From NCBI GenBank assembly GCA_965637545.1, contig OZ281500.1:24180001-24244000 (forward strand): DNA of 64,000 nucleotides. Reading direction: 5' to 3'. Each line of letters opens with the position of its first letter. Positions within the stretch are counted from its first letter, which is position 1. The notes beneath the pieces were generated by a model. It did no database searches and had not been told where the DNA came from. It saw only the letters and a list, made by a program, of their open reading frames with translations. A program made the position numbers and the translations under genes. Shown here piece by piece: positions 8,931 to 50,400 of the stretch. This DNA comes from Phallusia mammillata (lineage: Eukaryota).

Positions 8931-11565
8931 TCACACCGATGTTGAGTTTGTTGCTTTGCTTCTAGCAGGGAATTTTGTGTGTTTGTCTTTCTTCCAGAGA
9001 CGATAAACTGTGAGAAGATCTCGAGATGATTTGGTGAAGTTTCTGTCGCGGAAACTGTAAACGACCACGTTCACTAAACTGGAAGAAAAATAAGATGTTG
9101 TTGTCTTTATCTGACTTTGTTCTTGTCATAGATTGTGATTTCACTGTGACGTTACAATTTATTTAATGTGTCATCACATCGCGACGTATCGTTTACAAAG
9201 ATCTATATGCCTGATGTATAGTACTTAATTACGTCACTGATGATGTCATATAAGCTGCCAATTGCATGACGCAGTTAACCACGTTTTGAGGCAGAATTAT
9301 TATTGATCAATTTATTTAAGGTTTGTTTGTCAAGTTGGTTAAGCGATTTGCTGTAATGGAAGTAAATCATAAAATAAAAGAGAATCAGAACCCGGATCAG
9401 TTCAAGTTTTCATGAGTTTACCTGTTCGACATGCTGAGGTAGAAACACAACATGAAGGGAAGTGAAGCCGTGTCGCATGTTAAGGACTTCCCGAAGAACA
9501 GAACTTGCACAACGATCAGCGGAACTGAAAGAAAGATTTGAATGTAAAGTGAATTGCCTCAAAACTCCGATCGTGAAGTAGTTCATCTTACCGATGGTGA
9601 GAGTGAAGCCGATCTGCATAAGGATCACTGTCACGAACGTGCGAAGTTCTTTTTTGTCTGTCTTCTGTCGGAGTTGGTTGGATGTCTTCAGGTTGATGTG
9701 AACCACGATGATGGTTGCGACACAGGCGAGGGTCTGTGATGACGTAACAAGGTTGTGACGCATATGACCTTGAACCTTGACTTCTAATTTTCTTAGTATT
9801 TATAAAAGTAAAATCTATTTAATTTTGACGTGCGTGACCTTAAACTTAGACCTCCAATTTTCTTAGTTATGAAAGTGAAATCTTTGATCGTTTTCCGTTT
9901 ATTTCTGTTAGTCCGTTTTATTGCATTATTAGTTAAATTGCATTTTTGGTAAGACCTTAACTTTATTCTATCATCCAAAGGTCAGTGATTTTGCAACTTG
10001 AGTTAAAGGAAAAACTACAGTTCGATAAATTATGTTTGAGAATCATTACTTGTAATAAACTCTTCACACATTACCATTATGACGTAGGGAATGACGTAGA
10101 AAACAATGAGCATAGCAACGAGAGCATTGTGGCTTCCATCTCGATTTTGTATTTTTTTCTCAGTGAAGAAAAACAGAAATATCGTGTGCTGATAAGTGTA
10201 CACCATCGAATCAGGAAACCAGGCTGAAAATCATGTTGATTTGTCACAATGAAATATCTTGTTGTTGTTTCGACGAATTTAATTTAAAATTTTTGTAATT
10301 TTGTTTTATCTGGGGGCGTGTTCAGTCAGTTTTAGGAATGCTTCTTCCTTTGAAAACAAATTAGACAATGTTTACAATTCATCTTGCCGGACAAAATATG
10401 TACATAAACATTGGCATATATTCATCGTTATGCGTACAAACTCTGTACTGCTATCTAGTGATTTCAGGTTTCATTGGGAAACTTATTTATTTTTAACATT
10501 TGATGCAGTTTCACACCTGGTACGGTGCTGGACACAACAGCCAAAGCCCAAACCACAGCCAAACCGACGTAGACGTGAAAGCCACTTCGCGTCCGGTAAG
10601 AGAGTGGCCACTTGATGGCGTACAAGCGCTGTGCACCCATAAACACTAGGTGGTACAAAGAGCTAGTGAACGTAAGAAGGAGAAAGATTCCTCCCGCGGT
10701 CGCTTGAGCTGATCCTCGCAGTAAAAGTTGACGATGATCCAATTCCATCGACGAAACGTTCATCGTCCAACTGAAGTTGTAGATTGAAACCACCAGGAGT
10801 TGGACGCCTGAAAAACACACATGGCCAAGTTCAGACGTAATGCACCAAAAGATGCAAACGGTTTAACTGATGTTGCATGGCTGCCTTTGGTGCATTACCT
10901 TTTACTAACTGTTTACTGCTTAGATCGGCCATGTAGCGTTCAAGTTTACCCACAGTAACGACTGATTCGTATAAAAATCACAGATGTATGTCTGTGAAAA
11001 TCGAACTCTTTATCGTTAGCGCATGCTGCCTACGTTAGGACATCGATAGATTGGTCTTATATATAGAGCTCAATTTTGTACTTTTCCAATAAAATCCCCA
11101 AATGTTTTTACTAGTAAGAAAACCGGCGACAGCCAAAGAGAATTTCATCTTGTCGAAACTTTGACGGAGCCCGACTTTCTTTAACACCACCATTACAAGT
11201 ACGTTGCTGAACACACAGGCCAGACCGAACAGGACGACGAAAAATACAAAAAATCCTGCTCCTGCCTTGCTGCATTCTCCGCATGCGCACACTGGTTTGT
11301 TCGCGCATGCGCTGTAGGCCTTTTTGGAGCAAAATGCGGGAAAACCACACAATTTTGAAACAAGGATGAGATGCAAACTCGGTCCAGTGGCGTTAAATCG
11401 ATTAAAATTGGTCAGAGTGTTGTTATTTTTGATGCCAAGGTTTTCTAAACCCGGCCATTCTTCCGGTATGAAGTATTTTTCCTCTAATCTGTCAGTGGTT
11501 ATCAAGTGGGGCGTTCCTACAAACATACTTAAAAAATTCGTGGCATTTATTTGTGACAAATCCAT
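8931..11565 (-). CDS. Class A GPCR R1 with proximal first exon V1 (428 aa)
   Basis: Exons 11565-11112, 10807-10517, 10223-10075, 9733-9592, 9524-9422, 9078-8931 (454/291/149/142/103/148 nt), all GT-AG and in frame. Seven hydrophobic segments with N1.50 (FSN), TM3 QRL, W4.50, P5.50 (VIPY), TM7 NVVVY. TM2 reads LAVAGF (D2.50 to G). Confidence 0.85.
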
Positions 11566-12203
11566 GTCAAATTTACTTGAAGTTGTATTGCCAGTTTTAT
11601 GTTGATTTCTAAAATTGAATTGAGAAGAAAAAAGGATTTAGTATGTGTTCAATTTCTTCCAAGATTTCTTGCCAACCGTAACTATTTCTAACAATTTAGC
11701 GCTGATAACATATCGTTTGTCCTATAATTTCACTTCCAATCTTTTCCACAAATAATTTACTCAACGTTTTGCCAAAACTGATTTTGCCTACAAATCATCA
11801 AATAATTACATTTCGACGTAAAAACTCAATAAATTATCGATAAAAATGCTTTTTTCCCTCGTAAAAAAATAACTTGTCATCAGGGCGCCTGATACTTCGA
11901 AACTCTGTATCCGGACAGCAACGTGTTTACAAACGCTCAACTAGTTCATGTTACTCATTGGGTCGTATGTTGTTTGTGTACGAGTGCTTGCTCTGGCGCA
12001 CGGACGGTGTTGCCATGGTTACGAGTGACGAATGTGACATCAGACAAGGAACACCGAAAATAATTTACAGAAAAGAGGACTTGCTATTGCATTGAAAAAA
12101 TATATTTTGTCAAAACAGTTCGTGGTTTTGTGTCTAAGAAAATAGTTTAATGCTGTATTAGCGATACAACCGAACTAACATCATCCTAAACTATTTCACT
12201 AAC

Positions 12204-12657
12204 CAGTGAGAAAATCGGCGATAGCCATAGAGAACTTCATCTTGTTGAAACTTTGACGGAGCCCGAGTTTCTTTAACACCGCCAGTACAAGTACATTGCC
12301 GAACACACAGGCCAGACCGAGCAGGACGACGAAAAATACGAAAAATCCCGCTCCTGTCTTGCTGCATTCTGCGCATGCGCACAGTGGTTTGTTCGCGCAT
12401 GCGCTGTAGGCCTTGTTGGAGCAAAAGGCGGGAAAACCACACAATTTTGAAACAAGGATGAGATGCAAACTCGGTCCAGTGGCGTTAAATCGATTAAAAT
12501 TAGTAGGACTGTTGTTATATTTGATGCCAAGGTTTTCTAAACCCGGCCATTCTTCCGGTATGAAGTATTTTTCATCTAATCTGTCAGTGGTTATCAAGTG
12601 GGGCGTTCCTACAAACATACTTAAATAATTCGTGGCGTTTATTTGTGACAAATTCAT
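12204..12657 (-). CDS. Surplus GPCR first exon V2 (MNLSQ type), candidate alternative exon 1 of R1
   Basis: 454 nt (3n+1), open from ATG 12657 to LAIADFLT G, donor G|GTTAGT; no exons 2-6 between it and V1. Confidence 0.7.
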
Positions 12658-13295
12658 GTCAAATTTACTTGAAGTTGTATTGCCAGTTTTATGTTGATTT
12701 CTAAAACTGAATTGAGAAAAAAAGGGATTTAGTATGTGTTCAATTTCTTCCAAGATTTCTTGCCAACCGTAACTATTTCTAACAATTTAGCGCTCATAAC
12801 ATATCGTTTGTCCTATAATTTCACTTTCAATCTTTTCCACAAATAATTTACTCAACGTTTTGCCAAAGCTGATTTTGCCTACAAGTCATCAAATAATTAC
12901 ATTTCGACGTAGAAACTCAATAAATCTTCGACAAAAAATCTTTCTTCTCTCTTAAAGAATAACTTGTCATGTCAGGGCGCCTGATACTTCTAAACTCTGT
13001 ATCCGGACAGCAACGTGTTTACAAATGCTCAACTAGTTCGTGTGACTCATTGGGTCGTATGTTGTTTGTGTACGAGTACTTGCTCTGGCGCAAGAACGGT
13101 GTTGCCATGGTTACGAGTGACGAATGTGACATCAGACAAGGAACACCGAAAATAATTTACAGAAAAGAGGACTTGCTATTGCATTGAAAAAATATAATTT
13201 GTTAAAACAGTTCGTGGTTTTGTGTCTAAGAAAATAGTTTAATGCTGTATTAGCGATACAACCGAACTAACATCATCCTAAACTATTTCACTAAC

Positions 13296-13866
13296 CAGTG
13301 AGAAAGTCGGCGACAGCCAAAGAGAACTTCATCTTGTTGAAACTTTGACGGAGCCCGAGTTTCTTTAACACCGCCATTACAAGTACGTTGCCGAACACAC
13401 AGGCCAGACCGAGCAGGACGACGAAAAATACGAAAAATCCCGCTCCTGTCTTGCTGCATTCTGCGCATGCGCACAGTGGGGTGGTCGCGCATGCGCTGTA
13501 GGCCTTATCGGAGCAAAATGCGGGAAAACCGCACAACTTTGAAATTGTGAAATTTCTAAACTGATACAGCCGAGTTTTGTTGATAGTGCTGTTGAATCCA
13601 TCAGAAAAGTTGCTTGTTGTGTTGATTCCAAAGCGCGTATTGTAGTCTTGGCCTGATATATTGGTTGAAACGTTTTCAGCGTTGATGTTGCTGACTGTTT
13701 CTGCATCAAACTCCAGTGTTGGCAGGTTATCGTAGCCGGTTTCAGTTGGCCACTGAATCGAATCATCCTGATAGTAGTATAGTTCTCGATCCGTCATTAC
13801 GTAATGAAAACCTGTTACGTACGATCCATCTGAAAAGTTTGAAGCGCTTCCATTTGTATAAGCCAT
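13296..13866 (-). CDS. Surplus GPCR first exon V3 (MAYTNG type), candidate alternative exon 1 of R1
   Basis: 571 nt (3n+1), open, Cys module plus TM1-TM2, donor G|GTTAGT; no body of its own. Confidence 0.7.
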
Positions 13867-14254
13867 AATGTGTTCAATGATAATTAATTTAACTTTAAGT
13901 TAATATCTGAAAAATAATTTCGAAATGTATTTTTCAGACTTAAAACCTTGTCTATAATCCAGGTACCAAAAGATTTTGAAATCTTTATTGAAACCACCCC
14001 CCTTTTATCAGGCAATTGAACCTGTAATATACTTCTTGACTGGTTGCCAGTCAAAAACCTTCTTGTACTATTAGCAAGTACTGTCTGCAGTTCTTTAACA
14101 AACACATTTGTTGTATATTGCGCTACATTGTCACATTATGACGCAACAAACTGGCCAAACACCAAAAGAACATTTCCCATCACAGTAAAACAATTGTTAG
14201 TGTGGTTGTATTATATACTGCAAGGAAAAATATGTTTCAAAATAGTTTATGTTA

Positions 14255-14535
14255 CTCATTAGGTCGTATGTAGTTTAAAGATGAGCAACTGCTCTTTACG
14301 GATGATGTTGTTATGATGCGGAAAAAAAACTCGAATGCCCTGACTACTATTTGTAAGTTAGTGGGTGGAAAAACTCTTAGTGCAATTGCAGGGCAGATAA
14401 AGTACAATTGTTTGTCGATAAACTCGCATCAAGTAATAAGGCTGAATCAGTATAACTTTACCGGGATTTGAACTCGTGACCTGTTGCAAACTGTCGACCA
14501 CAGTATTAAATAACAATGCTTTTGTGGTTAATTTT
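14255..14535 (-). mobile_element. Putative tRNA-derived SINE (related copies ~28360-28625, ~44670-44945)
   Basis: Three ~280-bp homologous segments; minus strand carries B-box-like CACGAGTTCAAATCCCGGT; no complete cloverleaf. Confidence 0.5.
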
Positions 14536-14625
14536 TTTATCCCATTCTTCTCTACACAACTTTAATAACCTGAACCAATGTAACCGTTTTATGTTTGCGA
14601 CACGCTACTTATCAAACACTCTAGG

Positions 14626-14773
14626 CAGGGGTCGGCAACCTTTTTTAATGCGGACCGTTTTTGAAACTGACATTTTTTTTCTTTTTAGTGTTCTGGGTTA
14701 ATGTACTATGCGGCCCTATAAAATTGAGAACTTTTGAATGCGGCCCTTGCACTGAAAAGTTTGCCCACCCCTG
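14626..14773. mobile_element. hAT-type MITE
   Basis: TIRs CAGGGGTCGGCAACCTT / rc CAGGGGTGGGCAAACTT; imperfect CTAG-centred flanking duplication. Confidence 0.7.
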
Positions 14774-16216: not shown

Positions 16217-19200
16217 TTACACCGATGTAGAGTTCGCTGCTTTGCTTCTAGCAGGGACTTTTGTAGGTTTGTCGTTCTTACAGAGACGAGAAACTGTGAC
16301 AAGATCTCGAGCTGATTTGGTGAAGTTTTTGTCGCGGAAACTGTAAACGACCACGTTCACTAAACTGGAAGAAAAATAATATGTTGTTGTCTTTATCTGA
16401 CTTACTGAAGTAACTGAGATAAATTTACGGAAAACATTTACTGTGACGTTACAATTAATTCACTGTGATGTCACATCGCGACGTATCGTTTACAAAGATC
16501 TCTATGCCTGATGTAATATTTAATTGCGTCATTGATGATGTCGTAAGCTACTGCCAACTGCATGACACTGTTAAACATATTTTGTGGCAAAATCATTATT
16601 GATCAATTGATTTAAGTTTGTTTGTCAAGTTGGTTAAGTGATTTGCTGTGATGGAAGTAAATCATATAATAAAAGAGAATCATAACTTAGATCAGTTCAA
16701 ATTTTCATGAGTTCACCTGATTATCACTACATCTTATAATCCAATGAGCGTAGCGTATATTCACCTGTTTGACATGCTCAGGTAGAAACACACCATGAAG
16801 GGGAGTGAAGCCGTGTCGCATGTTAGGGACTTCCCGAAGAACAGAACTTGCACAACGATCAGTGGAACTTGAAGGAAGATTTGAATGTAAAGTGGATTAT
16901 CTCAATAAGCTTCGATCGTGAAGTTGTTTAACTTACCAATGGTGAGAGTGAAGCCAATCTGCATAAGGATCACTGTCACGAACATGCGTGCTTCTCTTTT
17001 ATCTGTCTTCTGCTGAAGTTGGTTGGATTTCTTCTGGTTGATGTGAACCACGATGATAGTCGCGACACAAGCGAGGCTCTGTTGTGACGTAATAAGATTG
17101 TGACGTAATAAGATTGTGACGTAACAAGATTGTGACGTAATAAGATTGTGACGTAACAAGATTGTGACGTATATGACTTTGAAATTTTTCTTAATATTTA
17201 TAAAAGTGAAAGCTATTTGATATTGACGTGCGTGACCTTGAACTTTGACCTCTAATTTACATTGTGAAATTCTTGAAATTTTGTTTTGGCAAAGGTTTTT
17301 TTTGCAATTCTCGTTCAACTCAAACTTTCGTCTATCATCCGCAAGGTCAATGATTTTTGCAAATTGAGTTAAAGGAAATCTACAGTTCGATGAATTATGT
17401 TTGAGAATCACTTCGTGTCATAAAATTTTGTACGCGTTACCATTATGACGTAGGGAATGACGTAGAAAACAATGAGCATAGCAACGAGAGCATTGTGGCT
17501 TCCATCTCGATTTTGTATTTTCTTCTCAGTGAAGAAGAACAGAAATATCGTGTGCTGATACGTGTACACCATCGAATCAGGAAACCAGGCTGAAAATCAT
17601 GTTGATTTGTCACAATAAAATATCTGGTTGTTGTTTCCAAGAATTTAATTATTAATATATTTTGTAAAGTAATTTTGTTTCATCTGAGGGCAAGTTCAGT
17701 CATTTTAAGAATTATTTTTTTACGCTTGAAAACGAATTAGACAATGTTTGTAAGTTTGCGTTGCTTGGCAAAATATGCAAATGCACATTGGCATAGTTTT
17801 CATCAATATGCGTACAAACTCTTTGCTGCTTTCTAGCGATTACATGTTTCATTTGACAATTTGGTTATTTTAAACATTTAAAGCAGTTTCATACCTGGTA
17901 CAGTGCTGGACACGACAGCCAAAGCCCAAACCACAGACAAGCCGATGTAGATCTGATAATTACTTTGCGTCCGGTACGAGATTGGCCACTTGATGGCGTA
18001 CAAGCGCTGTGCACCCATGAACAGTAGGTGGTACAAAGAGCTGGTGAATGTGAGAAGTAAAAAGATTCCTCCCACGGTCGCTTGAGCTGATCCTCGCAGT
18101 AAAAGTTGGCGCTGATCCAATTCCATCGACGAAACGTTCATCGTCCAACTAAAGTTGTAGATTGGAACCACCAGGAGTTGGATGCCTGCAAAACACAAGT
18201 GACCAAATTTAGATTTGAAGCAACAAAAATGCAAACGGTTTAACTGATGTTGCGTGGCTGCCTTTGGTATTATCTGTTTACTACTTAGATCGGACATGTA
18301 GCGTTCAAGTTTACCAGCAATAACGACTAATGTAGATAAAAATCACAGGTTGACAGGCCTACAAGGGACATTAAAGTGATTCCAAGCCGTCGTGCCAAGC
18401 ATTTCCATGCGTCGAAACGTAGATTAAAAATATATTTTAGTTATGCATGTATGTCTGTCAAAAATGAACTCTTTCTCGTTAGCGCATGCTGCATACGTAT
18501 AGACATCGATAGATTATATTATATAGAGCTAAATTTTGTACTTTTTCCTAGAATATTCCCAAATGTAATTACCAGTGAGAAAATCGGCGATAGCCAAAGA
18601 GAACTTTATCTTGTCGAAACGTCGGAGCCCGAGTTTCTTTAAAACCACCATTACAAGTACGTTGCCGAACACACAGGCCAGACCGAGCAGGACGACGAAA
18701 AATACGAAAAATCCCGCTCCTGTCTTGCTGCATTCTGCGCATGCACACAGTGGTGTGTTTGCGCATGCGCTGTAGGCCTTATCGGAGCAAAATGCTGGAA
18801 AACCGCACAACTTTGAAGATGTGAAATTTCGGAACCGATACAGCTTAGTTTTGTTAAAAGTGCTGTTGAATCCATCAGTAAAGTCGCTTGTTGTGTTGAT
18901 TCCAAAGCGCGTATTGTAGTATTGACCTGCTGACATATTGGTTGAAACGTTCTCAATGCTGATGTTGCTTACTGTTTCTCCATTGAAACTGACTGTTGGC
19001 AAGTCCGTGTAGTAATCCCCAATCCATTCAGGGATCGGTACCTCTAGGTATCGTTCCTCCCGGTCAGTCGTTATGTAGGTTAATTCTGGTTCGAAGATAA
19101 TGTAGTCTTGGCCTGATATATTGGTTGAAACGTTCTCATTGCTGATGTTGCTTATTGTTTCTCCATTGAAACTGAGTGTTGGTAAGTCCGTGTAGTAATC

Positions 19201-19506
19201 CCCAATCCATTCAGGGATCGGTACCTCTAGGTATCGTTCCTCCCGGTCAGTCGTTATGTAGGTTAATTCTGGTTCGAAGATAATGTAGTCTTGGCCTGAT
19301 ATATTGGTTGAAACGTTCTCATTGCTGATGTTGCTTATTGTTTCTCCATTGAAACTGAGTGTTGGTAAGTCCGTGTAGTAATCCCCAATCCATTCAGGGA
19401 TCGGTACCTCTAGGTATCGTTCCTCCCGGTCAGTCGTTATGTAGGTTAATTCTGGTTCCAAAATAATTTCCGTGAAGTTCCGAGCGCTTGTGTTGTGCAT
19501 TGCCAT
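16217..19506 (-). CDS. Class A GPCR R2 (588 aa) with triplicated 61-aa ectodomain module
   Basis: Exons 19506-18573, 18185-17895, 17589-17441, 17078-16937, 16867-16765, 16364-16217; intact frame and GT-AG sites; ends NSTSV-stop. Confidence 0.85.
17081..17170. repeat. 16-bp minisatellite (GTGACGTAAYAAGATT) x ~5 at the R2 exon-4 acceptor
   Basis: Direct reading of 17081-17170; paralogous introns carry only about two units. Confidence 0.85.
18920..19466. repeat. Coding tandem repeat, 183 bp x ~3, in R2 exon 1
   Basis: TAATTCTGGTTC recurs at 19081, 19264 and 19447 (period 183); units 19101-19283 and 19284-19466 are almost identical. Confidence 0.95.
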
Positions 19507-24180: not shown

Positions 24181-25011
24181 TGCGAGTTTAGATAAGTTTT
24201 TTACCCAATGTATTCTTAAAATGAAGAAGTTTTTTTAACTTATGCTTAAATGAGAGTTCCGCGATCACCCAAAGGAACACTTTTGCTACACAAGTAAACC
24301 CTGTTCTTTTTTACATTTAAATAAGAAACTTAACGTATAATCAAAAAAGCTAAAAAAGAATGTAAAATATAAACTTCCAACTGATCTTGCTTTCGTTGCA
24401 ATAATGAATGTAAAGGTTGTTGCTAAGTGGGAAGTTAAAACGTTCAGTAAAAAACATTTGAAAGCTGAACCCTCCTGGTTATATACACGTAAGAAACGTT
24501 GTCTAATCTTCTTCGTGTTTCCTTTTTAACTTTAGTTTGTTTCTATATTCACACTGATACATTCAGAATTCTTACCAACTTGTCTGTTATCTGTCCATCA
24601 TTTTTGGCTGAAAAACACACATGTCTTGCTGCCAATGTACTTTCATGTGTGGAATCAATTTTACAAGAATCACTAAAAAAGTGCCTGATCTTAGCGCTGT
24701 GCCTAAATACTAAACCGTGCCATTACTTCTGTCACGAACATAGAATTTCTGTTAAGACCAACCATTGCAAAACTGCATCGCAATAATCGTCATATTAAGC
24801 AAGTTTTGCAGCATAACAACATATCCGATGTCACGATCATGTTTCGGTATGTTTAAAGTAGAAAACCTAAGATCCGTACGAACATGTGCGCCAGTACGAA
24901 GGGGTAATAGCCTCCTTCCCTCATTTGGTATATCATTGTCCCAAATTTAACTTAAATTTAGCATATTTTACCAAAAAATGTTGATGAATGAAAACGTGTC
25001 ATGTTCTAAGA

Positions 25012-25207
25012 CAGTAGTTCTCAATATTTCAGTGTCGAGGTCAAATGGTAGTTTTTTAAGTGTATAAGGAGCTGCAAAATCACTAAAGATTTTTACTTTG
25101 AAATCTAAAATAGCAATCTTTAGTGGTTTTCTGCGGTCTGGTGCGAGCCACAAAATAAGTTGTTGGGAGCCGTATGCGGCCCTGAGAGCCGCGGTTAAGA
25201 AATACTG
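25012..25207. mobile_element. hAT-type MITE (paralogue at 34793-34993)
   Basis: Imperfect CAGT..TTCTCAA-type TIRs; same position in the duplicated spacer. Confidence 0.6.
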
Positions 25208-25824
25208 TTCAAAAAAGTTATAAAGAAAAATTTGTTCAGGGATGCACCGAAGCTTTGGTTGGCTGCAAAATTCTGTCGAAGTATTTCCTTGTGTCGGTTT
25301 TGGCTCAGACACATTCAACATTGCGTTCTTTACTTGTTTCTAAGAGAATAGACTGATAACGTAGAGCGATGGTGAAGTCAGGCATAGTTTAGTAATTTAC
25401 GTACAATTTGTTTCGAAAACAGACTTTGATTTGTTGTACGAAATTTTGCTTATTCTGATGTGTATTTTTTTGTGTAAGTTCGCATGGATCCCATGTTTTG
25501 TGAGGTTTAAAGCCTAAATATACACTAAAGTTTTTGCATTTTGTTGTATTATTTGGAAAAATTTGTGAATAAGAATTTTTTGTGGTTTAATAAATTACAA
25601 GTTACGTCATAGTCCGGAAACACGCAGCACCCAATAAGCGCAACAGATGTTTTTAGGTAACCCTGCATAAAAGACTGAACAACGAAAGTGTACATTTCGA
25701 ATTACATTTACCACTGCCTTTTGCGCATGTTGCTTGTGCATGTATCCAGTAAGATGGCCAGATGGACCGTAGTTATCGTTACAAATTATTACTGGGATAT
25801 CAATAGTATAAAAAATATCTTTAC

Positions 25825-26278
25825 CTGTTAGAAAATCGACGACAGCCAAAGAGAACTTCATCTTGTTGAAACTTTGACGGAGCCCGAGTTTCTTTAACAC
25901 CACCATTACAAGTACGTTGCCGAACACACAGGCCAGACCGAGCAGGACGACGAAAAATACGAAAAATCCCGCTCCTGTCTTGCTGCATTCTGCGCATGCG
26001 CACAATGGTGTGTTCGCGCATGCGCTGTAGGCCTTGTTGGAGCAAAAGGCGGGAAAACCACATAATTTTGAAACAAGGATGAGACGCAAACTCGGTCCAG
26101 TGGCGTTAAATCGATTAAAATTAGTAGGACTGTTGTTATATTTGGTGCCAAGGTTTTCTAAACCCGACCATTCTTTCGGTATGAAGTATTTTTCATCTAT
26201 TCTATCAGTGGTTATCAAGTGGGGCGTCCCTACAAATATACTTAAAAAATACGTGGCGTTTATTTGTGACAAATCCAT
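25825..26278 (-). CDS. Surplus GPCR first exon V6 (MDLSQ type), candidate alternative exon 1 of R3
   Basis: 454 nt, open, donor ACAG|GTAAAG; no exons 2-6 between it and V5. Confidence 0.7.
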
Positions 26279-26916
26279 GTCAAATTTACTTGAAGTTGTA
26301 TTGCCAGTTTTATGTTGATTTCAAAACTGAATTGAGAAAAAAAGGGATTTAGTATGTGTTCAATTTCTTCCAAGATTTCTTGCCAACCGTAACTATTTCT
26401 AACAATTTAGCGCTGATAACATATCGTTTGTCCTATAATTTCACTTCCAATCTTTTCCACAAATAATTTACTCAACGTTTTGCCAAAGCTGATTTTGCCT
26501 ACAAGTCATCAAATAATTACATTTCGACGTAAAAACTCAATAAATCATCAATAGAAAACTCTTTTCCCTCTTAAAAAATAACTTATAATGTCAGGGCGCC
26601 TGATACTTCTAAACTCCGTATCCGGACATCAACGTGTTTACAAACGCTCAACTAGTTCATGTGACTCATCGGGTCGTATGTTGTTTGTGTACGAGTGCTT
26701 GGTCTGGCGCACGGACGGTGTTGCCATGGTTACGAGTGACGAATGTGACATCAGACAAAGGAACACCGAAAATACTTTACAGAAAAGAGGACTTGTTATT
26801 GCATTGATAAAAATATATTCTGTCAAAACAGTTCGTGGTTTTGTGTCTAAGAAAATAGTTTAATGCTGTATTAGCGATACAACCGAACTAACATCATCCT
26901 TAACTATTTCACTAAC

Positions 26917-27505
26917 CAGTGAGAAAATCGGCGACAGCCAAAGAGAACTTCATCTTGTTGAAACTTTGACGGAGCCCGAGTTTCTTTAACACCGCCATTA
27001 CAAGTACGTTGCCGAACACACAGGCCAGACCGAGTAGGACGACGAAAAATACGAAAAATCCCGCTCCTGTCTTGCTGCATTCTGCGCATGCGCACAGTGG
27101 TGTGTTTGCGCATGCGCTGTAAGCCTTATTGGAGCAAAAGGCGCGAAAACCACACAATTTTGAAGTTGTGAAATTTCTGAACCGATACAGTATAGTTTTG
27201 TTAAAAGTGCTGTTGAATCCTCCAGAAAAGTTAATTCCTTCAGAAAAGTTGAATCCCTTAGTTAAACTGCTTGTTGTGTTGATTTCAAAGCTCGTATTGT
27301 TGACTTGGCCTGATATATTGGTTGAAACGTTTCGAGTGCTGATGTTACTTAATGTTTCTGCGTTAAACTCCAGTATTGGCAAGTTATCGTAGCCGACTCC
27401 AGCTGGCCACTGATTTGAATCATCCTGGTAATAGTAGAATAGTTCTCTAACCGCCATTACGTAATAATAACTTGTTACGCTGAGAAAATTTTGAAGCGCT
27501 TCCAT
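26917..27505 (-). CDS. Surplus GPCR first exon V7 (V3 paralogue), candidate alternative exon 1 of R3
   Basis: 589 nt open from ATG 27505, donor G|GTTAGT. The ATG homologous to V3 (27518) is out of frame and ends after 23 codons, so the exon may be partly decayed. Confidence 0.55.
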
Positions 27506-29069
27506 TTGGTAAAGCCATTATGTTTTCAAAGATAATTTAACTTTGATTTAATATCTGAAAAATATTTTGGAAATGTATTTTTCAGACTTAAAACCTAACC
27601 TTCCCCACTAAATTTTGTATACATAGCTAACTAATTGCGTGCATACATTTAATGCAGTTGTTGTATATATAACTATAGTTCAAAACAGCTTTACCCGCCT
27701 ACGGTAAAGAAGACATACGAGTTGACTGATGCTTGCCACCACTCACTGCAAGCTGCGATGTTTTTGCGAGCTTTGTTTTTTTATGTTACAACTGGAGGCG
27801 ACGTTATATTTTTTTTATCGGTCGGTCGTCACATGTTGAGGCGGGGAGGGGCCTCTACAATTATAAAAAAAACATAATAACTAAGCATACCAACTTTTAT
27901 ATTTTTCCTATTAAATTTACCATTGATTAAGTGCCTTTGTTCCATAGTTGTTAATGTTACCGTTGAAAACCTAAACCTAACTTTCGCTTCACAAGATCAT
28001 TTAAAAACTCTATTTTTGCATGGATTTCCAATGCTTTTGTCTGCATACAGTCATTGTTATTCACACACAGTATTATGTTTAACTATCTAAATGTCTTTTA
28101 TGAGTCAATTGCTGTAATCCGCATATATTTAATATTCCTTAATAATTACCACAATCGATGTAGCTTAACCGTTTTTGACAACACAAGATTTTGTAAAGTT
28201 ACAAACTTGGGCAATACTTGATTATTACATAACAGACGTTCCTCGAACATGCTTTATCCTGCGCACTATCATCACATCAAAGTAAAACAATTGTTGGTTC
28301 CGGTTTTATTATATAGCGCCGGTGAAAACAACGAGGACAAATATGCCTTAAAGTGGTTTATGTTACTCATTATGTCGTATGTAGTTTAAAGATGAGCAAT
28401 CACTGAGTGCGGATGATGTTGTTATGATGCGGAAAAGTTAATATACAGAAAAACTCGAATGCTCTGGCCACTAATTGTAGTGGGTGGAAAAACTGTTAGT
28501 ACAATTGCAGGGCAAATAAAGTACAATGATTTGTCGATAAACTCGCATCAACTAATAAGGGTGGATAGGTATAACTTTACCGGGATATGACCCTATGTCC
28601 TATTGCTAACTGTAGACAAATAACAAACAGATTTTAAATTTATACTGACGAATATACGGGAGGATTTACCGAGGAAGATTTTACTGTTTTTAAAAACATG
28701 GTGTTTTGTAAATCTTTTCAACATAGAGTACGATTTTTGATAATCAACATACAATACAATATTACAAATCATCGCATATATTCAACCAATAAAAAAACTA
28801 CTACACTAGTTTCATATAGACTGCCTTTGGTCGTTCCTTATCTCTGTTACATTGCGCTAAGTCTGGTTCAAACAGTTCACTTTGTTTATAAAAGAGTTTA
28901 TATTCCCTGCCCGTCGAAACATTCTGCTGCTTTATGTAGTAACATTGCTGTGAAAACTGAAACCAGATTGGATCGCGCTATTCAGTTAAGTGGTCCCTTC
29001 AATTACACTTGAGTTGAGTTGAGTGGACTCTTTAATTACAATTGAGTTGATTTGAGTTGAGTGGTTCCC

Positions 29070-31927
29070 TCACACCGATGTAGAGTTTGTTGCTTTGCTT
29101 GCAGCAGGGGATTTTGTAGGTTTGTCGTTCTTGCAGAGACGAGAAGCTGTGAGAAGATCTCGAGCTGATTTGGTGAAGTTTTTGTCGCGGAAACTGTAAA
29201 CGACCACGTTCACTAAACTGGAAGAAAAATAAGATGTTGTTGTCTTTATCTGACTTTGTTACTAAACTGGATTGTAAACTTGCGGAAAACCTTCACTGTG
29301 ACGTGACAATTAATTCGCTGTGACGTCACATCACAACGTAATCTGTATAAACGTCTACATGCTTGATGTAAGATTTTATTGCGTCACTGATGATGTCACA
29401 AGCTGTTAACCATGTCGTGCGGCAGAAACATTATTGAATATTATATGTAAGGGTTGTCAAGTTGGTTAAGTAGTTTGTTGTTGTGGGTATACCAATATAT
29501 TTGTATACAAATAATATAACAGAATTGCAACTTGGATTAGTTCAAGTTTTTATGAGTTCACCTGATTATCACTACATCTTATTATCCAATGAGCGTAGCG
29601 TATATTCACCTGTTCGACATGCTGAGATAGAAACACACCAGGAAGGGAAGTGAAGCCGTGTCGCATGTTAAGGACTTCCCGAAGAACAGAACTGGCACAA
29701 CGATCAGTGGAACTGGAAAGGAAGATTTGAATGTAAACTGAATTGTTTCAAAAAGCTCCAATCGTAAAGTAGTTTAACTTACCAATGGTGAGAGTGAAGC
29801 CAATCTGCATAAGGATCACTGTCACGAACATGCGAACTTCTCTTTTATCTGTCTTCTGCCGAAGTTGGTTGGACTTCTTCTGGTTGATGTGAACCACGAT
29901 GATGGTTGCGACACAAGCGAGACTCTGTTGTGACGTAACAAGGCTGTGATGACCTTAAATTTTGACCTCCTATTTTCATTGTAAAATTCTTGAACGTTTG
30001 TTTTGGAAAATGTCTATGAATGTAAACGTTAGGAAAAAGCTGATACATGCGATTGCGGTTAATAACAAATTCTGTTTAATAGCAACTTTTAGTTCAACTC
30101 AAACTTTCGTTTATCTCCACGAACTCGATGATTTTGCAATTTGAGTTAAAGGAAACTTTGCAGTTTGATAAATTATGTTTGTGAATCACTTCGTGTCATA
30201 AACTTACCATTATTACGTATGGAATGACGTAGAAAACAATGAGCATAGCAACGAGAGCATTGTGGTTTCCGTCTCGATTTTGTATTTTCTTCTCAGTGAA
30301 GAAGAATAGGAATGTCGTGTGCTGATAAGTGTACACCATCGAATCAGGAAACCAGGCTGAAAATCATGTTGATTTGTCACAATAAAATATATTGTTGTTG
30401 TTTCGACGAATTTTATTTCAAATTTTAGCAATTTTGTTTTATATGAGTATGTTTTTAGTAAGTTTTGGAAATATTCAATGGAAAACGAATTAGACATTTT
30501 TTGTAAGTTTGTGTTGCTTGACAAAATATGTACATAAACATTGGCATAATGTTCAACAACATGCGGACAAACTCTTTACTTCTCCAGTGATTTTAAGTTT
30601 CATTGTAAAACTTAGTTATTTTCAACATTTGATGCATGTCATACCTGGTACGGTGCTGGACACGACAGCCAAAGCCCAAACCACGGCCAAGCCGACGTTG
30701 ACGTGAAAATCGCTTTGCATCCGGTACGAGAGTGGCCATTTGATGGCGTACAAGCGCTGCGCACCCATGAACACTAGGTGGTACAAAGAGCAGGTGAATG
30801 TAAGAAGGAGAAAGATTCCTCCCACAGTCGCTTGAGCCGATCCTCGCAGTGAAAGTTGGCGCTGATCCAATTCCGTCGACGAAACGTTCATCGTCCAACT
30901 AAAGCTGTAGATTGCAACCACCAGGAGTTGGACGCCTGAAAAACATACATGACTAAATTTTAACGCACCAAGGAATGAGAAACATTTTAATTGATAAATA
31001 AATGCTGCCAGGCATAATGTACAAACGAGTATTGCTCTTCCAGCAGTTTTTATTACAAACTATCCAGATTTTGACATCACATATAAAACGTCTTATCAGG
31101 ATAATAGCGTATCTTGCAAGATAAATTATTTTTCACTGATGTTGTATGGCTGCCTTTGGAGCATAACCTTTTACCAATTCTTTACTCGGAAAAGTAGCGT
31201 TCAAGTTTGCCCACAGTAAGGACTGATTCGTATAAAATCACAGGTTGGCAGGCTTGCAAGGGACGTTATGCTGAACCATGTCTGCCAGCCAAGCATTTGG
31301 CCACGCCCACAAACGTAGGTTAGAAATATGAACAAAGTTACAGATGTACGTCTTTGAAAATCGAACTTCTTGCATGCTGCCTACGTAAGGACTTCGATAG
31401 ATTGGTCTTACATAGAGCTCAATTTTGTACTTTTCAATAATATCCCCAAATGTTTTTACTTGTGAGAAAATCGGCGACAGCCAAAGAGAATTTCATCTTG
31501 TCAAAACTTTGACGGAGCCCGAGTTTCTTTAACACCACCATTACAAGTACGTTGCTGAACACACAGGCCAGACCGAGCAGGACGACGAAAAATACGAAAA
31601 ATCCCGCTCCTGTCTTGCTGCATTCTGCGCATACGCGCAGTGGTGTGTTCGCGCATGCGCTGTAGGCCTTATCGGAGCAGATGCGAGAAAACCACACAAA
31701 ATGTTGGTTAAAACGTTCTCATTGCTGATGTTGCTTTTAGTTTTCCCAACGTTGCCAGTTGTTAGTGAGAAATTGTTGTTTGAGATGGTCAACATTTTTT
31801 CAAGTTCGTAAGAACTTAACGACTCTCGGATAACTAATACATTGGCCCCGCCGTCATTTGAGTTAATCATAACCCAGGTGTCGTCGTAATTTGAGAAGTT
31901 CGTACTACTTGTGTTTTGCAATGCCAT
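29070..31927 (-). pseudogene. GPCR R4: intact body (exons 2-6) with frameshifted proximal first exon V8
   Basis: V8 31927-31460 is 468 nt (not 3n+1): 39-codon deletion plus a 1-nt loss in GFPAFC (gcatctgctcc), giving a stop at 31541. Body exons 30935-30645, 30356-30208, 29924-29783, 29712-29610, 29217-29070 are all open with GT-AG sites. Confidence 0.8.
31003..31120 (-). mobile_element. Decayed short Penelope-derived element in R4 intron 1
   Basis: Begins TGCTGCCAGGCATAA and aligns to the 49808 copy; core degraded to CTGATAAG; absent from paralogous introns. Confidence 0.55.
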
Positions 31928-32664
31928 TGCGAGTTCAGATAAGTTTTCCACGCAAGGTCTAAAATGCAATCTTAAAATGGAGAAGTTTTTTTTAACTTTT
32001 TCTAAAACGTAAATAAGAGTTCCGCGATCACCCAAAGGAACACTCTTGAAAGTTTCAATAAACTCTTTTCTACATTTAGATAAGAAACTTTTAATTGAAA
32101 AAACGAAATACGAATGTAATAAACAACTTGACCAACTGATCTTGCTTTCGTTGCAATCTTTGTTATATTTTTTAAAAATAATGAAAGTAAAGGTCGTTGC
32201 TAAAAACATTTTGAACCTGAACCCTCATGGTTATATACACGTAAAAAACGTTGTCTAATCTTCTTAGTTTTTCCTTCATAAGTGTAGTTTCTTTTCTGTA
32301 TTCACACTGATACATTCAGACATCTAACCAACTTGCCTGTTGTTTGTCAATCATTTTTGGCTGAAAAACACTCATGTCTTGCTGCCAATGTGATTTCATG
32401 TTGTGAATCTATTTTACAAGAATTACTGAAAAAATCTTAGCGCTGTGCTTAAATAGTTATACCGTGCCATTACTTCTGCCACGAACATAAAATTTCTGAT
32501 TTAAAAGACCAGCCGTGGCACTGCATCGCAACCACCGTGATGTTAAAAAAGTTATCTAGCATAGCAGCATATCCGATGTTATACATAACATGATCATGAA
32601 TACACTGTTGCTGCCAGGCATAACGTATTAACAGAATTTTTAGCTCTTCCGGCAGTTTTTTATT

Positions 32665-32730
32665 GTAATATGCCAACGTTTCGATGTCCCATACGAAACA
32701 CCTTCATCAGGGTAATGACATACATTGCAA
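32665..32730 (-). ncRNA. Minimal type I hammerhead ribozyme motif in inverted Penelope arm
   Basis: Reverse complement of the 34507-34572 motif (tcatcag 32704-32710, aacgtttc 32675-32682). Confidence 0.7.
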
Positions 32731-33614
32731 ACACAAGTTATTATAAAGCGAAAAGGGCGGCGAAACACACACAAAAAAGGCGATAGAAATAACGCAGTGC
32801 GCACCAATGGTCGTGTGATAACACCTGGCTCAATGGTGCAAAAGCGACCGATAAGTTATCGGCATTAGAACGTCCGTTTTAACGTTCATCGTGTTGGTGT
32901 GAGAATGTATGTTCCACGACTCCAGGAAACCTCGCTTGTGAAAATCGGTTTCTCTAGCTAACACCTGGGCAGCAGAGAAGTTTATGGTGTGAGCGAGGGT
33001 AGTAGCATGTTGTGCTAATGCCGATTTTTTAGCATCTTTTTTGGCTACATCCCTCTCGTGTTCTTTACGGCGCGTATTCAGAGATCTTCCCGTTTCGCCA
33101 ATGTAAATCTCCTTGCACTGTTGACATGGGATCGCGTACACCACACCCCTTGCTGCGTTTGTATCAATGGGATCTTTGGGGTGCGACAGCATCTGACGTA
33201 GGGTGTTGACTGGTTTAATCCCTACTGAGACCCCAAAGTCGATTAACATGCGACGTATTACGTCTGTTAACCTAGGAATGTATGGCAAGGTAACAAATGT
33301 ACGCTCTTTGGACTGAACCTTTTTCCGAGCACCCGTGGTTTTTCGGTCACGGAGGATCCAGTTCGGGTAGCCATTTAACCGCAGGGCCTGGTGTACCCTT
33401 CGTATTACAGGCAACAGACGGGAGACTTTCCACGCAAGTGTACCACAAACCAACGAGCACCAGGCGCTACTTGCATTTCACGTCTCACCATCCTCTACAC
33501 CACAAGAGAGCTGTGGTGAAATCGCTGACAGATCAGGCCCGAAGGTTGACCACAGAACCCGGAATGCTCCAAACCGAATTACGAAGGGTACACCAGGCCC
33601 TGCGGTTAAATGGC

Positions 33615-33814
33615 NNNNNNNNNNNNNNNNNNNNNNNNNNNNNNNNNNNNNNNNNNNNNNNNNNNNNNNNNNNNNNNNNNNNNNNNNNNNNNNNNNNNNN
33701 NNNNNNNNNNNNNNNNNNNNNNNNNNNNNNNNNNNNNNNNNNNNNNNNNNNNNNNNNNNNNNNNNNNNNNNNNNNNNNNNNNNNNNNNNNNNNNNNNNNN
33801 NNNNNNNNNNNNNN
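33615..33814. other. Assembly gap (200 N) with overlapping flanks
   Basis: 33562-33614 is identical to 33815-33867 (53 bp). Confidence 0.95.
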
Positions 33815-34506
33815 GAATGCTCCAAACCGAATTACGAAGGGTACACCAGGCCCTGCGGTTAAATGGCTACCCGAACTGGATCCTCCGTGACCGAAAAACC
33901 ACGGGTGCTCGGAAAAAGGTTCAGTCCAAAGAGCGTACATTTGTTACCTTGCCATACATTCCTAGGTTAACAGACGTAATACGTCGCATGTTAATCGACT
34001 TTGGGGTCTCAGTAGGGATTAAACCAGTCAACACCCTACGTCAGATGCTGTCGCACCCCAAAGATCCCATTGATACAAACGCAGCAAGGGGTATGGTGTA
34101 CGCGATCCCATGTCAACAGTGCAAGGAGATTTACATTGGCGAAACGGGAAGATCTCTGAATACGCGCCGTAAAGAACACGAGAGGGATGTAGCCAAAAAA
34201 GATGCTAAAAAATCGGCATTAGCACAACATGCTACTACCCTCGCTCACACCATAAACTTCTCTGCTGCCCAGGTGTTAGCTAGAGAAACCGATTTTCACA
34301 AGCGAGGTTTCCTGGAGTCGTGGAACATACATTCTCACACCAACACGATGAACGTTAAAACGGACGTTCTAATGCCGATAACTTATCGGTCGCTTTTGCA
34401 CCATTGAGCCAGGTGTTATCACACGACCATTGGTGCGCACTGCGTTATTTCTATCGCCTTTTTTGTGTGTGTTTCGCCGCCCTTTTCGCTTTATAATAAC
34501 TTGTGT

Positions 34507-34572
34507 TTGCAATGTATGTCATTACCCTGATGAAGGTGTTTCGTATGGGACATCGAAACGTTGGCATATTAC
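34507..34572 (+). ncRNA. Minimal type I hammerhead ribozyme motif in Penelope 3' end
   Basis: CTGATGA 34527-34533, stem II GGTGT/ACATC, then GAAACGTT (palindromic stem III, predicted cut after 34562), CC/GG closing stem I. One extra A sits between core and stem II. Confidence 0.7.
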
Positions 34573-34792
34573 AATAAAAAACTGCCGGAAGAGCTAAAAA
34601 TTCTGTTAATAACATGATCATGATCATGTTTTGGTATTTTAAGAAGAGAAAACCTATCCATGTGCACACGAGCATGGGCGCCAGTACGAAGGGGTAATGT
34701 CTCCTTCCCTCACCTGGAATATCATTGTAACTGAAAATTAGCATATTTCGCCAAAAAATCCTGATGAATGATAAAAGTGCCATGTTCTAAGT

Positions 34793-34993
34793 CAGTGCTT
34801 CTCAACCTTTTTTAATATCGGGGCCAAATGGTAGTTTTTTAAGTGTGTAAGGAGCTGCTAAACATGACTAAAGATTATAACCTTGAAAGCTAACATAGCA
34901 ATCTTTGGTGGTTTACTAAAGGTCTGGTGCGAGCCACAGAACAAGCAGTTGGGAGCCGCATGCGGCCCTGATAGCCGCGTTTGAGAATCACTG
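34793..34993. mobile_element. hAT-type MITE
   Basis: TIRs CAGTGCTTCTCAA / TTGAGAATCACTG. Confidence 0.65.
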
Positions 34994-35587
34994 TTCAAAT
35001 AGAGTTATAGTTATAGAGAGAAACCAGTCCTATTTACGTATCTGGTGTTGTTTCCCTATCTTCTTCCGGTTTGCTGCTTTTGGAACTGACAAAATGATAC
35101 ACGTGATAGATGCGTAGCTATATGTTAGGATTTTAATATAGCAGAGCAGTGGTTCTCAACTCGTTTCAGGTCATAGACCATGAGCCCAGTCAAACTAACT
35201 TCATGGACCATTCCTTTTTTTTAATGAGATTGATGTAAGCATACGCAGCAAGAAGTTCCACTTGAAACAAAATTCTTTGACCTCCTAGTTTTTGCATTTC
35301 ATAGCAATATTTGGAAAAAAAGTTGTGGAAAAAAATGTTTTTGTGGTGTGTTAAGTTATAAATTACGTCATAGTCCAGCCAAAAGCAGCACCCAATACGC
35401 ACAACAGAAGTTTTAAGGTAACCATGCATAAAAGACTGAGCTACGCAAGTGTGCATTCCGAATTGCATTTACCACTGCCTTTAGCGCATGTTGCTTGTGT
35501 ATGCATCCAGTAAGATATGGCCAGATGGACCATAGTTATCGTTACAAATTATTACTGGGATATCAATGGTATAAAAAATATCTTTAC

Positions 35588-36236
35588 CTGTTAGAAAATC
35601 GACGACAGCCAAAGAGAACTTCATCTTGTTGAAACTTTGACGGAGCCCGAGTTTCTTTAACACCACCATTACAAGTACGTTGCCGAACACACAGGCCAGA
35701 CCGAGCAGGACGACGAAAAATACGAAAAATCCCGCTCCTGTCTTGCTGCATTCTGCGCATGCGCACAATGGTGTGTTCGCGCATGCGCTGTAGGCCTTGT
35801 TGGAGCAAAATGCGGGAAAACCACACAACTTTGAAATTGTGAAATTTCTGAATCGATACAGCCCAGTTTTGTTGACAGTGTGGTTGAATCCACCAGAAAA
35901 GTTAAATTCATCATAAAAGTTGGTTTCATTAGAAAAGTTGAATCCATCAGGAAAGGTAAATCCATCAGTAAAGTTGCTTGTTGTGTTGATTCCAGAGCTC
36001 GTATTGTTGACTTGATTGGATATATTGGTTAAAACGTTTTCAGCGCTGATGGCACTCACTGTTTCTTCATTGAAACTGAGTTCTGGCAAGTTAATGTCGT
36101 CATCTCCACCCCATGTATAGATTGGTTCCCATGCGTAACGTGTTTCTTGTACTCGGTCAGCCGTTACAATGTGCATCGAAATAAGGCCAAAGTCAAAATC
36201 CGAAGCGTTCGTGTCACTTGTGTTTTGCATTGCCAT
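35588..36236 (-). CDS. Surplus GPCR first exon V9 (MAMQN type), candidate functional exon 1 of R4 (493 aa if spliced to 30935)
   Basis: 649 nt (3n+1), open, donor ACAG|GTAAAG; the next exon 2 downstream is that of R4. Confidence 0.7.
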
Positions 36237-36239
36237 TGT

Positions 36240-38168: not shown

Positions 38169-38409
38169 TTATGAAACTAAAAGACGCATTTCTAAAAAGG
38201 TAAATAACATAATTGTTTGTACAAGTTTGTTAAAAGTGTACAGAGGATATATTTCAGACAGTAGTAGAAGATATTTTTCCAGTTTTATAAGAAACGATTG
38301 GGTGAGTTTCCTTTTTCTTCTGTTGGCAGCAACTTGAAACTGTAAAAGCTTTTTGGTCGCTTTGTTGAAAGTCTGGTCATAAAAACTGTAAATTATCACG
38401 TTCACCAAG
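38169..38409 (-). pseudogene. Orphan, frameshifted GPCR last exon (TM7/helix 8/C-tail relic)
   Basis: Acceptor ttttcag|C then LVNVIIYSFYDQTF. Restoring 1 nt near 38345 gives KKL.TVSSCCQQKKKETHPIVSYKTGEISSTTV-stop (38254). No matching exons 1-5 nearby. Confidence 0.7.
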
Positions 38410-50110: not shown

Positions 50111-50194
50111 CTGAATGCGCGTGGTACAGTGCACGATACACAAAGGAGAAAAGATAACCAAATTGCACCAAAAAACACTGTTGCAATAACGTTT

Positions 50195-50400
50195 CTTTTT
50201 GCGCGTGCTCACAATTGTGTGTTGGCACAAGCGATGTAGGCTTCGTTGTAGCTAAAGGCGAAAAAACCACACAAAACTGTGGTTACATTGCGATTTATGG
50301 ACGATTCGTTGAATTCGTTGGCGATTTTAAAGTTAAACTGCGTAGGGGTTATTAAAGGTCATATCCGATCTGCGGTTGCGCTGTGATAGTTACTTTAGAA
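50195..50400 (-). pseudogene. Decayed GPCR first exon V12 upstream of R6
   Basis: Translates as NEFNESSINRNVTTVLCGFFAFSYNEAYIACANTQL-stop (TGA 50211-50209), matching R6 exon 1 (TEFNESAIHRNITTVLCGFPAFCSNEAYKECANTPL). TM1-TM2 part is missing. Confidence 0.7.

Follow-up and report, generated by a model that had tools for sequence, protein, structure and literature searches.

The window examined in the present work, a stretch of 64,000 nucleotides (nt) from the ascidian Phallusia mammillata (assembly GCA_965637545.1, contig OZ281500.1, positions 24,180,001 to 24,244,000 of the forward strand), is GC-poor DNA of animal type whose minus strand carries eight complete six-exon genes of a divergent rhodopsin-type G protein-coupled receptor (GPCR) family (7tm_1 in Pfam). 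Five surplus first exons, which have no exons 2 to 6 of their own, are stacked upstream of other first exons in this array. The stacked layout is real and is more than chance would produce, and one of the stacks is old. The reading favoured here, which is held with slightly more belief than doubt, is that the locus is a birth-and-death array driven by recombination, and that the spare first exons are young by-products which gene conversion has maintained.

A preliminary description of this DNA had likened the layout to the clustered protocadherin and UGT1A loci, in which variable first exons with their own promoters are spliced to shared constant exons. A system of that kind is unproven in Phallusia, and the locus as a whole lacks demonstration as a maintained variable-first-exon system.

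Anatomy of the receptor array

In the direction of transcription the array reads V10-B5, a relic of exons 5 and 6, V9-S2-V8-B4 (with an insertion in S2), V7-S-V6-S2-V5-B3, V4-B2 and V3-S-V2-S-V1-B1, where V is a first exon, B is a body of exons 2 to 6, and S and S2 are the two kinds of spacer which follow surplus first exons. Clusters are numbered by their bodies, and all of the receptor features, whose positions are counted from the first letter of the window, lie on the minus strand. The product of exon 1 comprises a variable ectodomain rich in N-glycosylation sites, a Cys box (LCGFPAFCS...CAC.EC), the first transmembrane helix (TM1) and the start of TM2; the exon ends in phase 1 with ...DFLT G|GT, and the first two bases of exon 2 fill the split codon. 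In bodies B1-B5, exons 2-6 measure 291/149/142/103/148 nt and their reading frame is fully open. The bodies which lie downstream of the stacks are B1 (10807-10517, 10223-10075, 9733-9592, 9524-9422 and 9078-8931), B3 (21279-23222) and B4 (29070-30935), with exon 2 acceptors at 10807, 23222 and 30935.

The best protein match of the window is P0001, a transcript-derived P. mammillata sequence which bears the name ‘trace amine-associated receptor 9-like’ and represents a paralogue from another locus. P0001 matches 7tm_1 (PF00001) over residues 117-394 with E=1.3e-18, and exon 2 of B3 by itself scores 28.2 bits against the same profile, just below the cut-off, being only a fragment. The motifs GNVLV (with N1.50) and LAVAD (with D2.50) are found in 12 of 13 first exons, V1 reading AVAG, and in all bodies the DRY position is occupied by QRL and the NPxxY position by NVVVY. 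Judged by these motifs, the receptors would belong to a divergent class A family. Identity as trace amine-associated receptors (TAARs) or aminergic receptors was considered and rejected: position 3.32, when it is counted back from the R of QRL on the assumption that QRL is the equivalent of DRY, is Leu and not Asp, and TM7 reads NSLVNVVVYSFRDKNF, with no NP and no YxWF, so that the fingerprint NSxxNPxxYxxxYxWF is missing. The TAAR name is an automatic label.

The five surplus exons reported in the preliminary description were recovered with their donors at 12204, 13296, 25825, 26917 and 35588, each of them ...DFLT G|GT. They are V2 (12204-12657; type-B ectodomain, 454 nt, weak donor CTG|GTTAGT), V3 (13296-13866; type-A ectodomain, 571 nt, frame intact from the ancestral ATG, weak donor GTTAGT), V6 (25825-26278; type B, 454 nt, strong donor CAG|GTAAAG), V7 (26917-27518; type A, weak donor GTTAGT) and V9 (35588-36236; 649 nt, strong donor GTAAAG). 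V6 and V9 also have in common the change A2.49V and a 3' codon signature. The assertion that all five are open, 3n+1 long and matched in phase is borne out when each is read from its farthest in-frame ATG, with the qualification that in V7 this is a secondary ATG at 27505 (589 nt open, 26917-27505), since an 8-nt deletion behind the ancestral ATG at 27518, which is homologous to the V3 start, leads to a stop after 23 codons. V2, V3, V6, V7 and V9 thus each have an ATG and a donor of their own, in the matching phase, and no downstream exons of their own, as the variable-first-exon layout demands. The proximal exons beneath them are V1 of B1 (11112-11565; type B, with A rather than G as the last exon base), V5 of B3 (23592-24180; intact, with a strong donor) and V8 of B4 (31460-31927; broken). 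The tally of 14 first exons for eight bodies needs adjusting: 13 copies possess the GAGFF core, and a fourteenth is obtained only by counting a dead relic upstream of V11 (50131-50352). This sixth surplus first exon has a stop within its Cys box, and its TM1 is degenerate.

This relic is not an isolated case, for the array carries partial pieces at every stage of decay. V8 has a frameshifting 1-nt deletion in the Cys box together with an in-frame deletion of 117 nt. The private changes in the conserved part of V1 amount to 8 replacements, among them D2.50->G, against 3 synonymous changes, which is the neutral pattern of a relaxed sequence. Between B5 and V9 lie orphan exons 5-6 of a P0001-like paralogue (38257-38851), of which exon 5 is nearly identical to residues 355-386 of P0001 and exon 6 is frameshifted.

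Copy modules, gene conversion and the ages of the stacks

The spacer S, which starts GTTAGTGAAATAG..., follows V2, V3 and V7, and occupies 11566-12203 between V2 and V1 (638 bp, beginning GTTAGTGA, with an in-frame TAG TGA directly after the exon), 12658-13295 between V3 and V2, and 26279-26916 between V7 and V6. The spacer S2, which starts GTAAAGATATT..., follows V6 and V9. Its cluster 3 copy (24181-25824) is homologous only to the V9-V8 spacer, at 79-86%, and the paralogous copy in cluster 4 is split by the insertion into 31928-32579 and 34614-35587. The spacers had been described as unrelated to the true intron 1, which is accurate for S, where there is no similarity at all, and nearly so for S2, which resembles intron 1 for about 12 nt only. 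A search of S and S2 for relics of exons 2-6 found none, so the origin of the stacks by deletion of bodies is without direct demonstration. S contains a 27-nt element which is shared with the regions upstream of V3, V7 and V10, and its 3' part therefore resembles the sequence that normally lies 5' of a first exon. This element, AACNACATACGACCNAATGAGTNACAT, has six copies, all on the gene strand (11948-11974 in the V2-V1 copy of S, 13040-13066 in the V3-V2 copy, 14249-14275 at 383 nt upstream of V3, 26659-26685 in the V7-V6 copy, 28360-28386 and 44669-44695), where none would be expected by chance, and it is absent elsewhere. A segment of S2 at about 25049-25245 is a high-copy repeat, whose word depth in a DNA run is about 2,000 as against 10-200 elsewhere; one of the RNA-like runs described below also has a contig which touches it.

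The surplus exons are embedded in copied modules whose boundaries and ages can be measured. Between 11110 and 13544 there is a tandem repeat with a period of 1,092 bp, formed by a 454-nt type-B exon and the 638-nt S, which is present in 2.2 copies that are 94.7% alike. A 1.41-kb module comprising the 3' part of V7, S and V6 (25823-27232) is 94.7% alike to 12202-13611 (the 3' part of V3, S and V2), whereas outside this module the bodies and introns of clusters 1 and 3 differ by 14-17% (introns 17%). A 2.1-kb module which contains the ectodomain part of V9 and 1.7 kb of upstream sequence (35830-37934) is 93.6% alike to the V10 region at 42365-44469, and its noncoding upstream part is 3.7% diverged. 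Every copy module terminates inside or at the end of the 243-nt conserved part of exon 1, and divergence from the source amounts to only about 4-5% in most of the surplus sequence. S2 is the only old spacer: between its copies behind V6 and V9 the divergence is 14-21%, comparable to that of the B3 and B4 introns (16.6%), so that the stack consisting of exon, S2, proximal exon and body predates the split of clusters 3 and 4.

Across all copies, the conserved part itself, meaning the last 243 nt of exon 1, which encode the Cys box, TM1 and the beginning of TM2, shows a similarity of 88-99%. Between V6 and V9 it has 3 differences in 243 nt, while the adjoining spacer is 14% diverged. Between V3 and V7 it is 4.5% diverged, with 4.4% in the adjoining spacer, and the differences consist of 8 synonymous and 3 replacement changes, where about 2.5 synonymous changes would be expected from mutation in place; this excess is the signature of patches imported from paralogues which are under selection. 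On such comparisons gene conversion appears to have kept the conserved part uniform, as far as the GT itself. If so, an intact conserved part with G|GT at its edge can persist even though the exon is not used, and the sharp loss of similarity past the donor does not require a breakpoint at that place, because the conserved exon sequence is kept alike and the intron is not. The suggestion that the kept donor hints at an old, maintained layout therefore holds to the extent that the V6/V9-type stack is old, and is otherwise weakened both by conversion up to the GT and by the divergence of only about 4-5%.

Gene conversion also makes the plain ratio of non-synonymous to synonymous substitution rates (dN/dS) an unreliable measure for the conserved part. 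In the ectodomains, dN/dS is 0.5-1.2 for type B, 1.04 for V9/V10 and 0.76 for the old 5' half of V3/V7, and the ectodomain parts specific to surplus exons have substitution rates at or above those of neighbouring noncoding DNA. By these measures they appear to evolve neutrally, without amino-acid constraint.

The mechanism which we infer from the modules is that of birth and death in a tandem array, whose genes belong to a divergent rhodopsin-type family specific to ascidians, and in which non-allelic recombination and gene conversion would act on the 243-nt end of exon 1. Whole 5' modules, each with an upstream region, an ectodomain and the conserved part, would repeatedly have been copied onto other first exons or duplicated in tandem, and bodies would sometimes have been lost, which would leave stacks of first exons without exons 2-6. 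The surplus exons would then seem functional both because they are young and because their conserved part, including G|GT, has been overwritten from expressed paralogues.

Transcripts, selection and the use of the surplus exons

Read mapping was carried out for the cluster 3 stretch, using two small RNA-like runs from two studies, probably embryonic. No run is on record as RNA; the RNA nature was read from a contig from which intron 4 (GT..AG) has been removed and which continues into exon 6. Body 4 is the nearest match of this spliced exon 4-5-6 contig, with 4 mismatches over 245 nt, and the contig implies that both RNA-like runs contain mature mRNA of the receptor family. Junction reads had been named as a check on the layout, and the result within cluster 3 is divided, since family mRNA is present in the two runs and yet coverage is zero over the ectodomain parts of V6 and V7 and over S and S2. 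Neither the cluster 3 mapping nor the protein collections contain a junction, a transcription start site or a transcript that joins any surplus exon to exon 2.

Body 4 is transcribed with a V8-type exon 1: a 129-nt RNA contig from the conserved part of exon 1 matches V8 without a mismatch and can be told apart from V6, V9 and V10. The public protein P0003 (CAB3266776.1 / A0A6F9DUX3, 262 amino acids, ‘TAAR9-like’) is identical to body 4 from an internal Met in exon 2 to the stop. It would fit the longest open reading frame (ORF) of a V8-B4 mRNA, or else a 5'-truncated cDNA, and is unlike the product expected from V9-B4; as a database entry, it is a model truncated at the N-terminus, and the gene itself has a frameshifted first exon. 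The evidence is thin, but the sole cluster for which there is transcript evidence points to the broken proximal V8 and away from V9. Word-index protein searches for products of the surplus exons returned only P0001 and a distant fragment, P0002, and an exhaustive HMMER search added only P0003, which lacks a first exon. The collections searched hold no full-length product of the cluster, and exact look-ups of P0001 and P0003 in assemblies gave no match. From these results we infer that the surplus exons probably lack productive use.

The alternative which survives best is that the surplus exons are genuine alternative first exons, at least one of which is transcribed from its own upstream region and spliced to the downstream exon 2. 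V6 and V9 would be the likeliest to be so used, V2 or V3 may be replacing the decaying V1, and the system may be at an early stage. This is considered unlikely, although several observations speak for it and against the by-product reading. The phase and the G|GT are the same in 5 of 5 surplus exons, and when scored against 40 real donors of the window, the V6 and V9 donors exceed the median; both upstream exons of the S2 stack still have a strong donor, for all that the stack goes back to the separation of clusters 3 and 4. The exons of the type-B trio and of V9/V10 have accumulated 95 substitutions with no frameshifting indel and one in-frame indel of 18 nt, compared to 100 substitutions and 15 indels in comparable flanks (Fisher P=0.0002), a contrast which homopolymer runs in the spacers inflate somewhat. 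On the surplus lineages alone about 4.8 indels would be expected (P ~0.01, or ~0.09 if indel rates in exons are halved). The old 5' half of V3 remains open despite 14% divergence from V7.

Selection on the coding sequence gives a mixed picture. In the preliminary description, the comparison of surplus with proximal exons had been expected to separate maintained from dead copies, and it does so only in part: in the conserved part the private changes of the surplus exons (6 synonymous, 5 replacement; P=0.02) speak against neutrality where proximal V1 looks neutral, whereas the surplus ectodomains are, as described above, neutral. The bodies behind the decaying proximal exons are open and constrained, with an own-lineage omega of about 0.3 in B1 (13 synonymous and 13 non-synonymous private changes, P=0.003), though V1 is relaxed, and likewise of about 0.3 in B4 (P=0.04), though V8 is broken. 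The 27-nt element, a possible promoter-proximal element, lies 381-383 nt upstream of the ATGs of V1, V2, V3 and V6, and farther upstream for V7 and V10, and its fixed distance suggests that each stacked exon may bring its own promoter. The spacers are free of relics of body exons, and the RNA sampled comes from two small, probably embryonic runs, in which chemoreceptor-like genes may be silent.

Against these points stand the results that no transcript or junction supports the joining of a surplus exon to a body, that RNA contigs are absent from V6- and V7-specific sequence, and that the RNA of body 4 carries V8 and not V9, its deposited product being without a first exon. The start of V7 is frameshifted, and the ectodomains show no constraint. 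The donor GTTAGT of V2, V3 and V7 is weak, T at +3 occurring in 0 of the 40 other donors of the window, and no out-of-frame donor beside it scores above the annotated site. Acceptor-like sites, each a polypyrimidine tract followed by AG, lie 9-70 nt upstream of the ATGs of V1-V13 and are enriched over background (combined P=0.0002); they are probably acceptors for a spliced leader or for a 5' non-coding exon, and where they stand in front of inner exons they would capture a donor from upstream in the wrong frame. A cassette model, in which V3, V2 and V1 would be spliced in succession in one frame, was rejected, since the V3 donor joined to the acceptor-like site before V2 leads to a stop after about 17 codons. 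Finally, two loci of the family in Ciona and Clavelina have no stacks.

Occasional use of some of the surplus exons may occur, and V6 and V9 are the likeliest to be so used because of their strong donors and old spacer. The fuller proposition, that this is a chordate rhodopsin-type locus in which stacked modules with their own upstream elements share one TM2-TM7 core, and in which the distal exon took over in clusters 1 and 4, is doubtful.

A very improbable alternative is that the surplus exons act alone, as short single-pass proteins made up of the ectodomain, the Cys box and TM1. In V2, V3 and V7 the frame closes directly after the exon (GGT TAG TGA), so that an unspliced transcript would encode a membrane-anchored ectodomain of 151-197 amino acids. 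Such in-frame tandem stops are found right after the exon in 3 of 3 S-type copies, the weak donor makes retention plausible, and the exons are open and have an upstream element of their own; but the three stop arrangements amount to one event multiplied by copying, the frames of V6 and V9 stay open for another 35 codons inside the spacer, RNA coverage is zero, and the ectodomain is without constraint.

The least credible explanation is an assembly artefact, in which allelic or paralogous copies would have been placed wrongly in tandem and the stacks would be absent from the genome: ascidian genomes are highly heterozygous and the V9-V8 stack is crossed by an assembly gap with repeated flanks, but all 30 bins of 21700-27600 are covered by a DNA run from a separate study, S2 is matched exactly by contigs of that run measuring 1,033 and 638 nt and S by further ones, DNA runs of three studies contain 65-75% of the words, and the copies differ by 4-8% and have distinct flanks. 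The gap (33615-33814) overlaps no GPCR exon. It lies within the inserted element which splits the cluster 4 copy of S2 (32580-34613), an element which has a GIY-YIG domain (Penelope-like) and two arms of 779 bp (32626-33404 and 33833-34611) that form inverted repeats with 99.9% identity. The 53 nt which precede the gap occur again immediately after it, in the manner of two overlapping contig ends, and ORFs which cross the run of Ns are meaningless. On both sides of the insertion the spacer is colinear with the paralogous spacer of cluster 3, which makes the linkage of V9 with V8 and body 4 credible, although the V9-V8 distance is inexact.

Cluster 2 is an ordinary gene, V4 with B2 (16217-19506), which has a single first exon (18573-19506). 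The V4 ectodomain contains a tandem repeat of 183 nt (61 codons) in 2.9 copies with 98% identity (18930-19467), and the V4-specific junction between repeats is present in a contig of an RNA-like run, which indicates that this young repeat expansion is transcribed. Just upstream of the exon 4 acceptor of B2 there is a 16-nt minisatellite in 5.6 copies (17082-17171), of which the other bodies have fewer copies. Downstream of the array lies an unrelated exon of a membrane transporter resembling sodium/solute symporters (3922-4134, minus strand).

The two principal readings differ in what they would imply. If the surplus exons are used, the locus would be the first known arrangement of its type for a rhodopsin-type GPCR and a very young one, a system like those of the protocadherins, UGT1A or the insect Gr genes caught at its birth, and it could show how such systems originate from ordinary tandem arrays when a conserved segment of an exon recombines. 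If the surplus exons are unused, the array would be a worked example of a conserved exon segment driving recombination and gene conversion, in which dead partial copies can retain a perfect frame and donor; annotators would then be cautioned that an open exon with a kept donor is not proof of function.

Comparison with related loci and known systems

The family is found also in Ciona intestinalis and, abundantly, in Clavelina lepadiformis, where the receptors have the same Cys box and the same end of exon 1 and sometimes have Sushi-rich ectodomains. Such ascidian ‘CGFP-box’ receptors (A0A6F9D..., CAB3266776.1, Ciona XP_078484227.1 and Clavelina LOC143446702) share the Cys box, ...LTG|VQ..., AWFP and NSLVN. 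The absence of the layout from related species had been put forward as grounds for regarding the surplus exons as recent dead copies, and the two Ciona and Clavelina loci examined do consist of complete genes only, with no surplus first exons; these are distant paralogues, however, so that they form a weak test. In the Clavelina RefSeq isoform pairs that were compared, the difference lies at the C-terminus or in a 5' extension, and never in the first exon. At the Ciona intestinalis locus L002:10001-23748, XP_078484227.1 seems to combine exons of two tandem copies with a retrotransposon between them, and may be a merged model.

The preliminary description had noted no such layout for a class A GPCR cluster, and this agrees with a literature search, which found no paper on variable first exons in GPCRs and none on the Phallusia receptor family; no earlier variable-first-exon arrangement is known for a rhodopsin-type GPCR. 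The likeness to the protocadherin (alpha and gamma) and UGT1A loci consists in tandem 5' exons which have an ATG and a donor of common phase, have no further exons of their own and lie upstream of one downstream set, and in a short element which recurs at a fixed distance upstream of several of the first exons. The Phallusia locus differs in that its stacks contain only 2-3 exons, the whole body is duplicated as well, the copies are mostly only about 4-5% diverged, and the exons are preceded by acceptor-like sites. Membership in the variable-first-exon class is so far unsupported at its defining feature, as joined mRNAs are not seen in the RNA sampled.

For seven-helix chemoreceptors the nearest functioning parallel is provided by the gustatory receptor loci of insects, such as Gr23a, Gr28b and Gr39a of Drosophila and Gr214 of Tribolium with its 30 alternative 5' exons, in which long alternative 5' exons are joined to shared 3' exons (PMC6307266). 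These are likewise tandem arrays of seven-helix, chemoreceptor-type genes in which partial duplication has given rise to 5' exons for variable N-termini (PMC6307266). The insect receptors, unlike those of Phallusia, are not of the rhodopsin type, their variable exon codes for most of the helices, and their alternative mRNAs are documented; in Phallusia the variable part consists of the ectodomain, TM1 and half of TM2, and is known here from the genes alone.

The favoured reading, a birth-and-death array with spare first exons as by-products, has its counterpart in the vertebrate arrays of olfactory receptor (OR), TAAR and V1R/V2R genes, where paralogues likewise stand in tandem and undergo gene conversion, and where partial copies and relics range over all stages of decay. 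The genes of these vertebrate families mostly consist of a single exon, so that a partial copy cannot borrow a body. Here the Phallusia array is unlike them, since its intron after TM2 allows, in principle, a first exon that has no body of its own to borrow the body of a neighbour.

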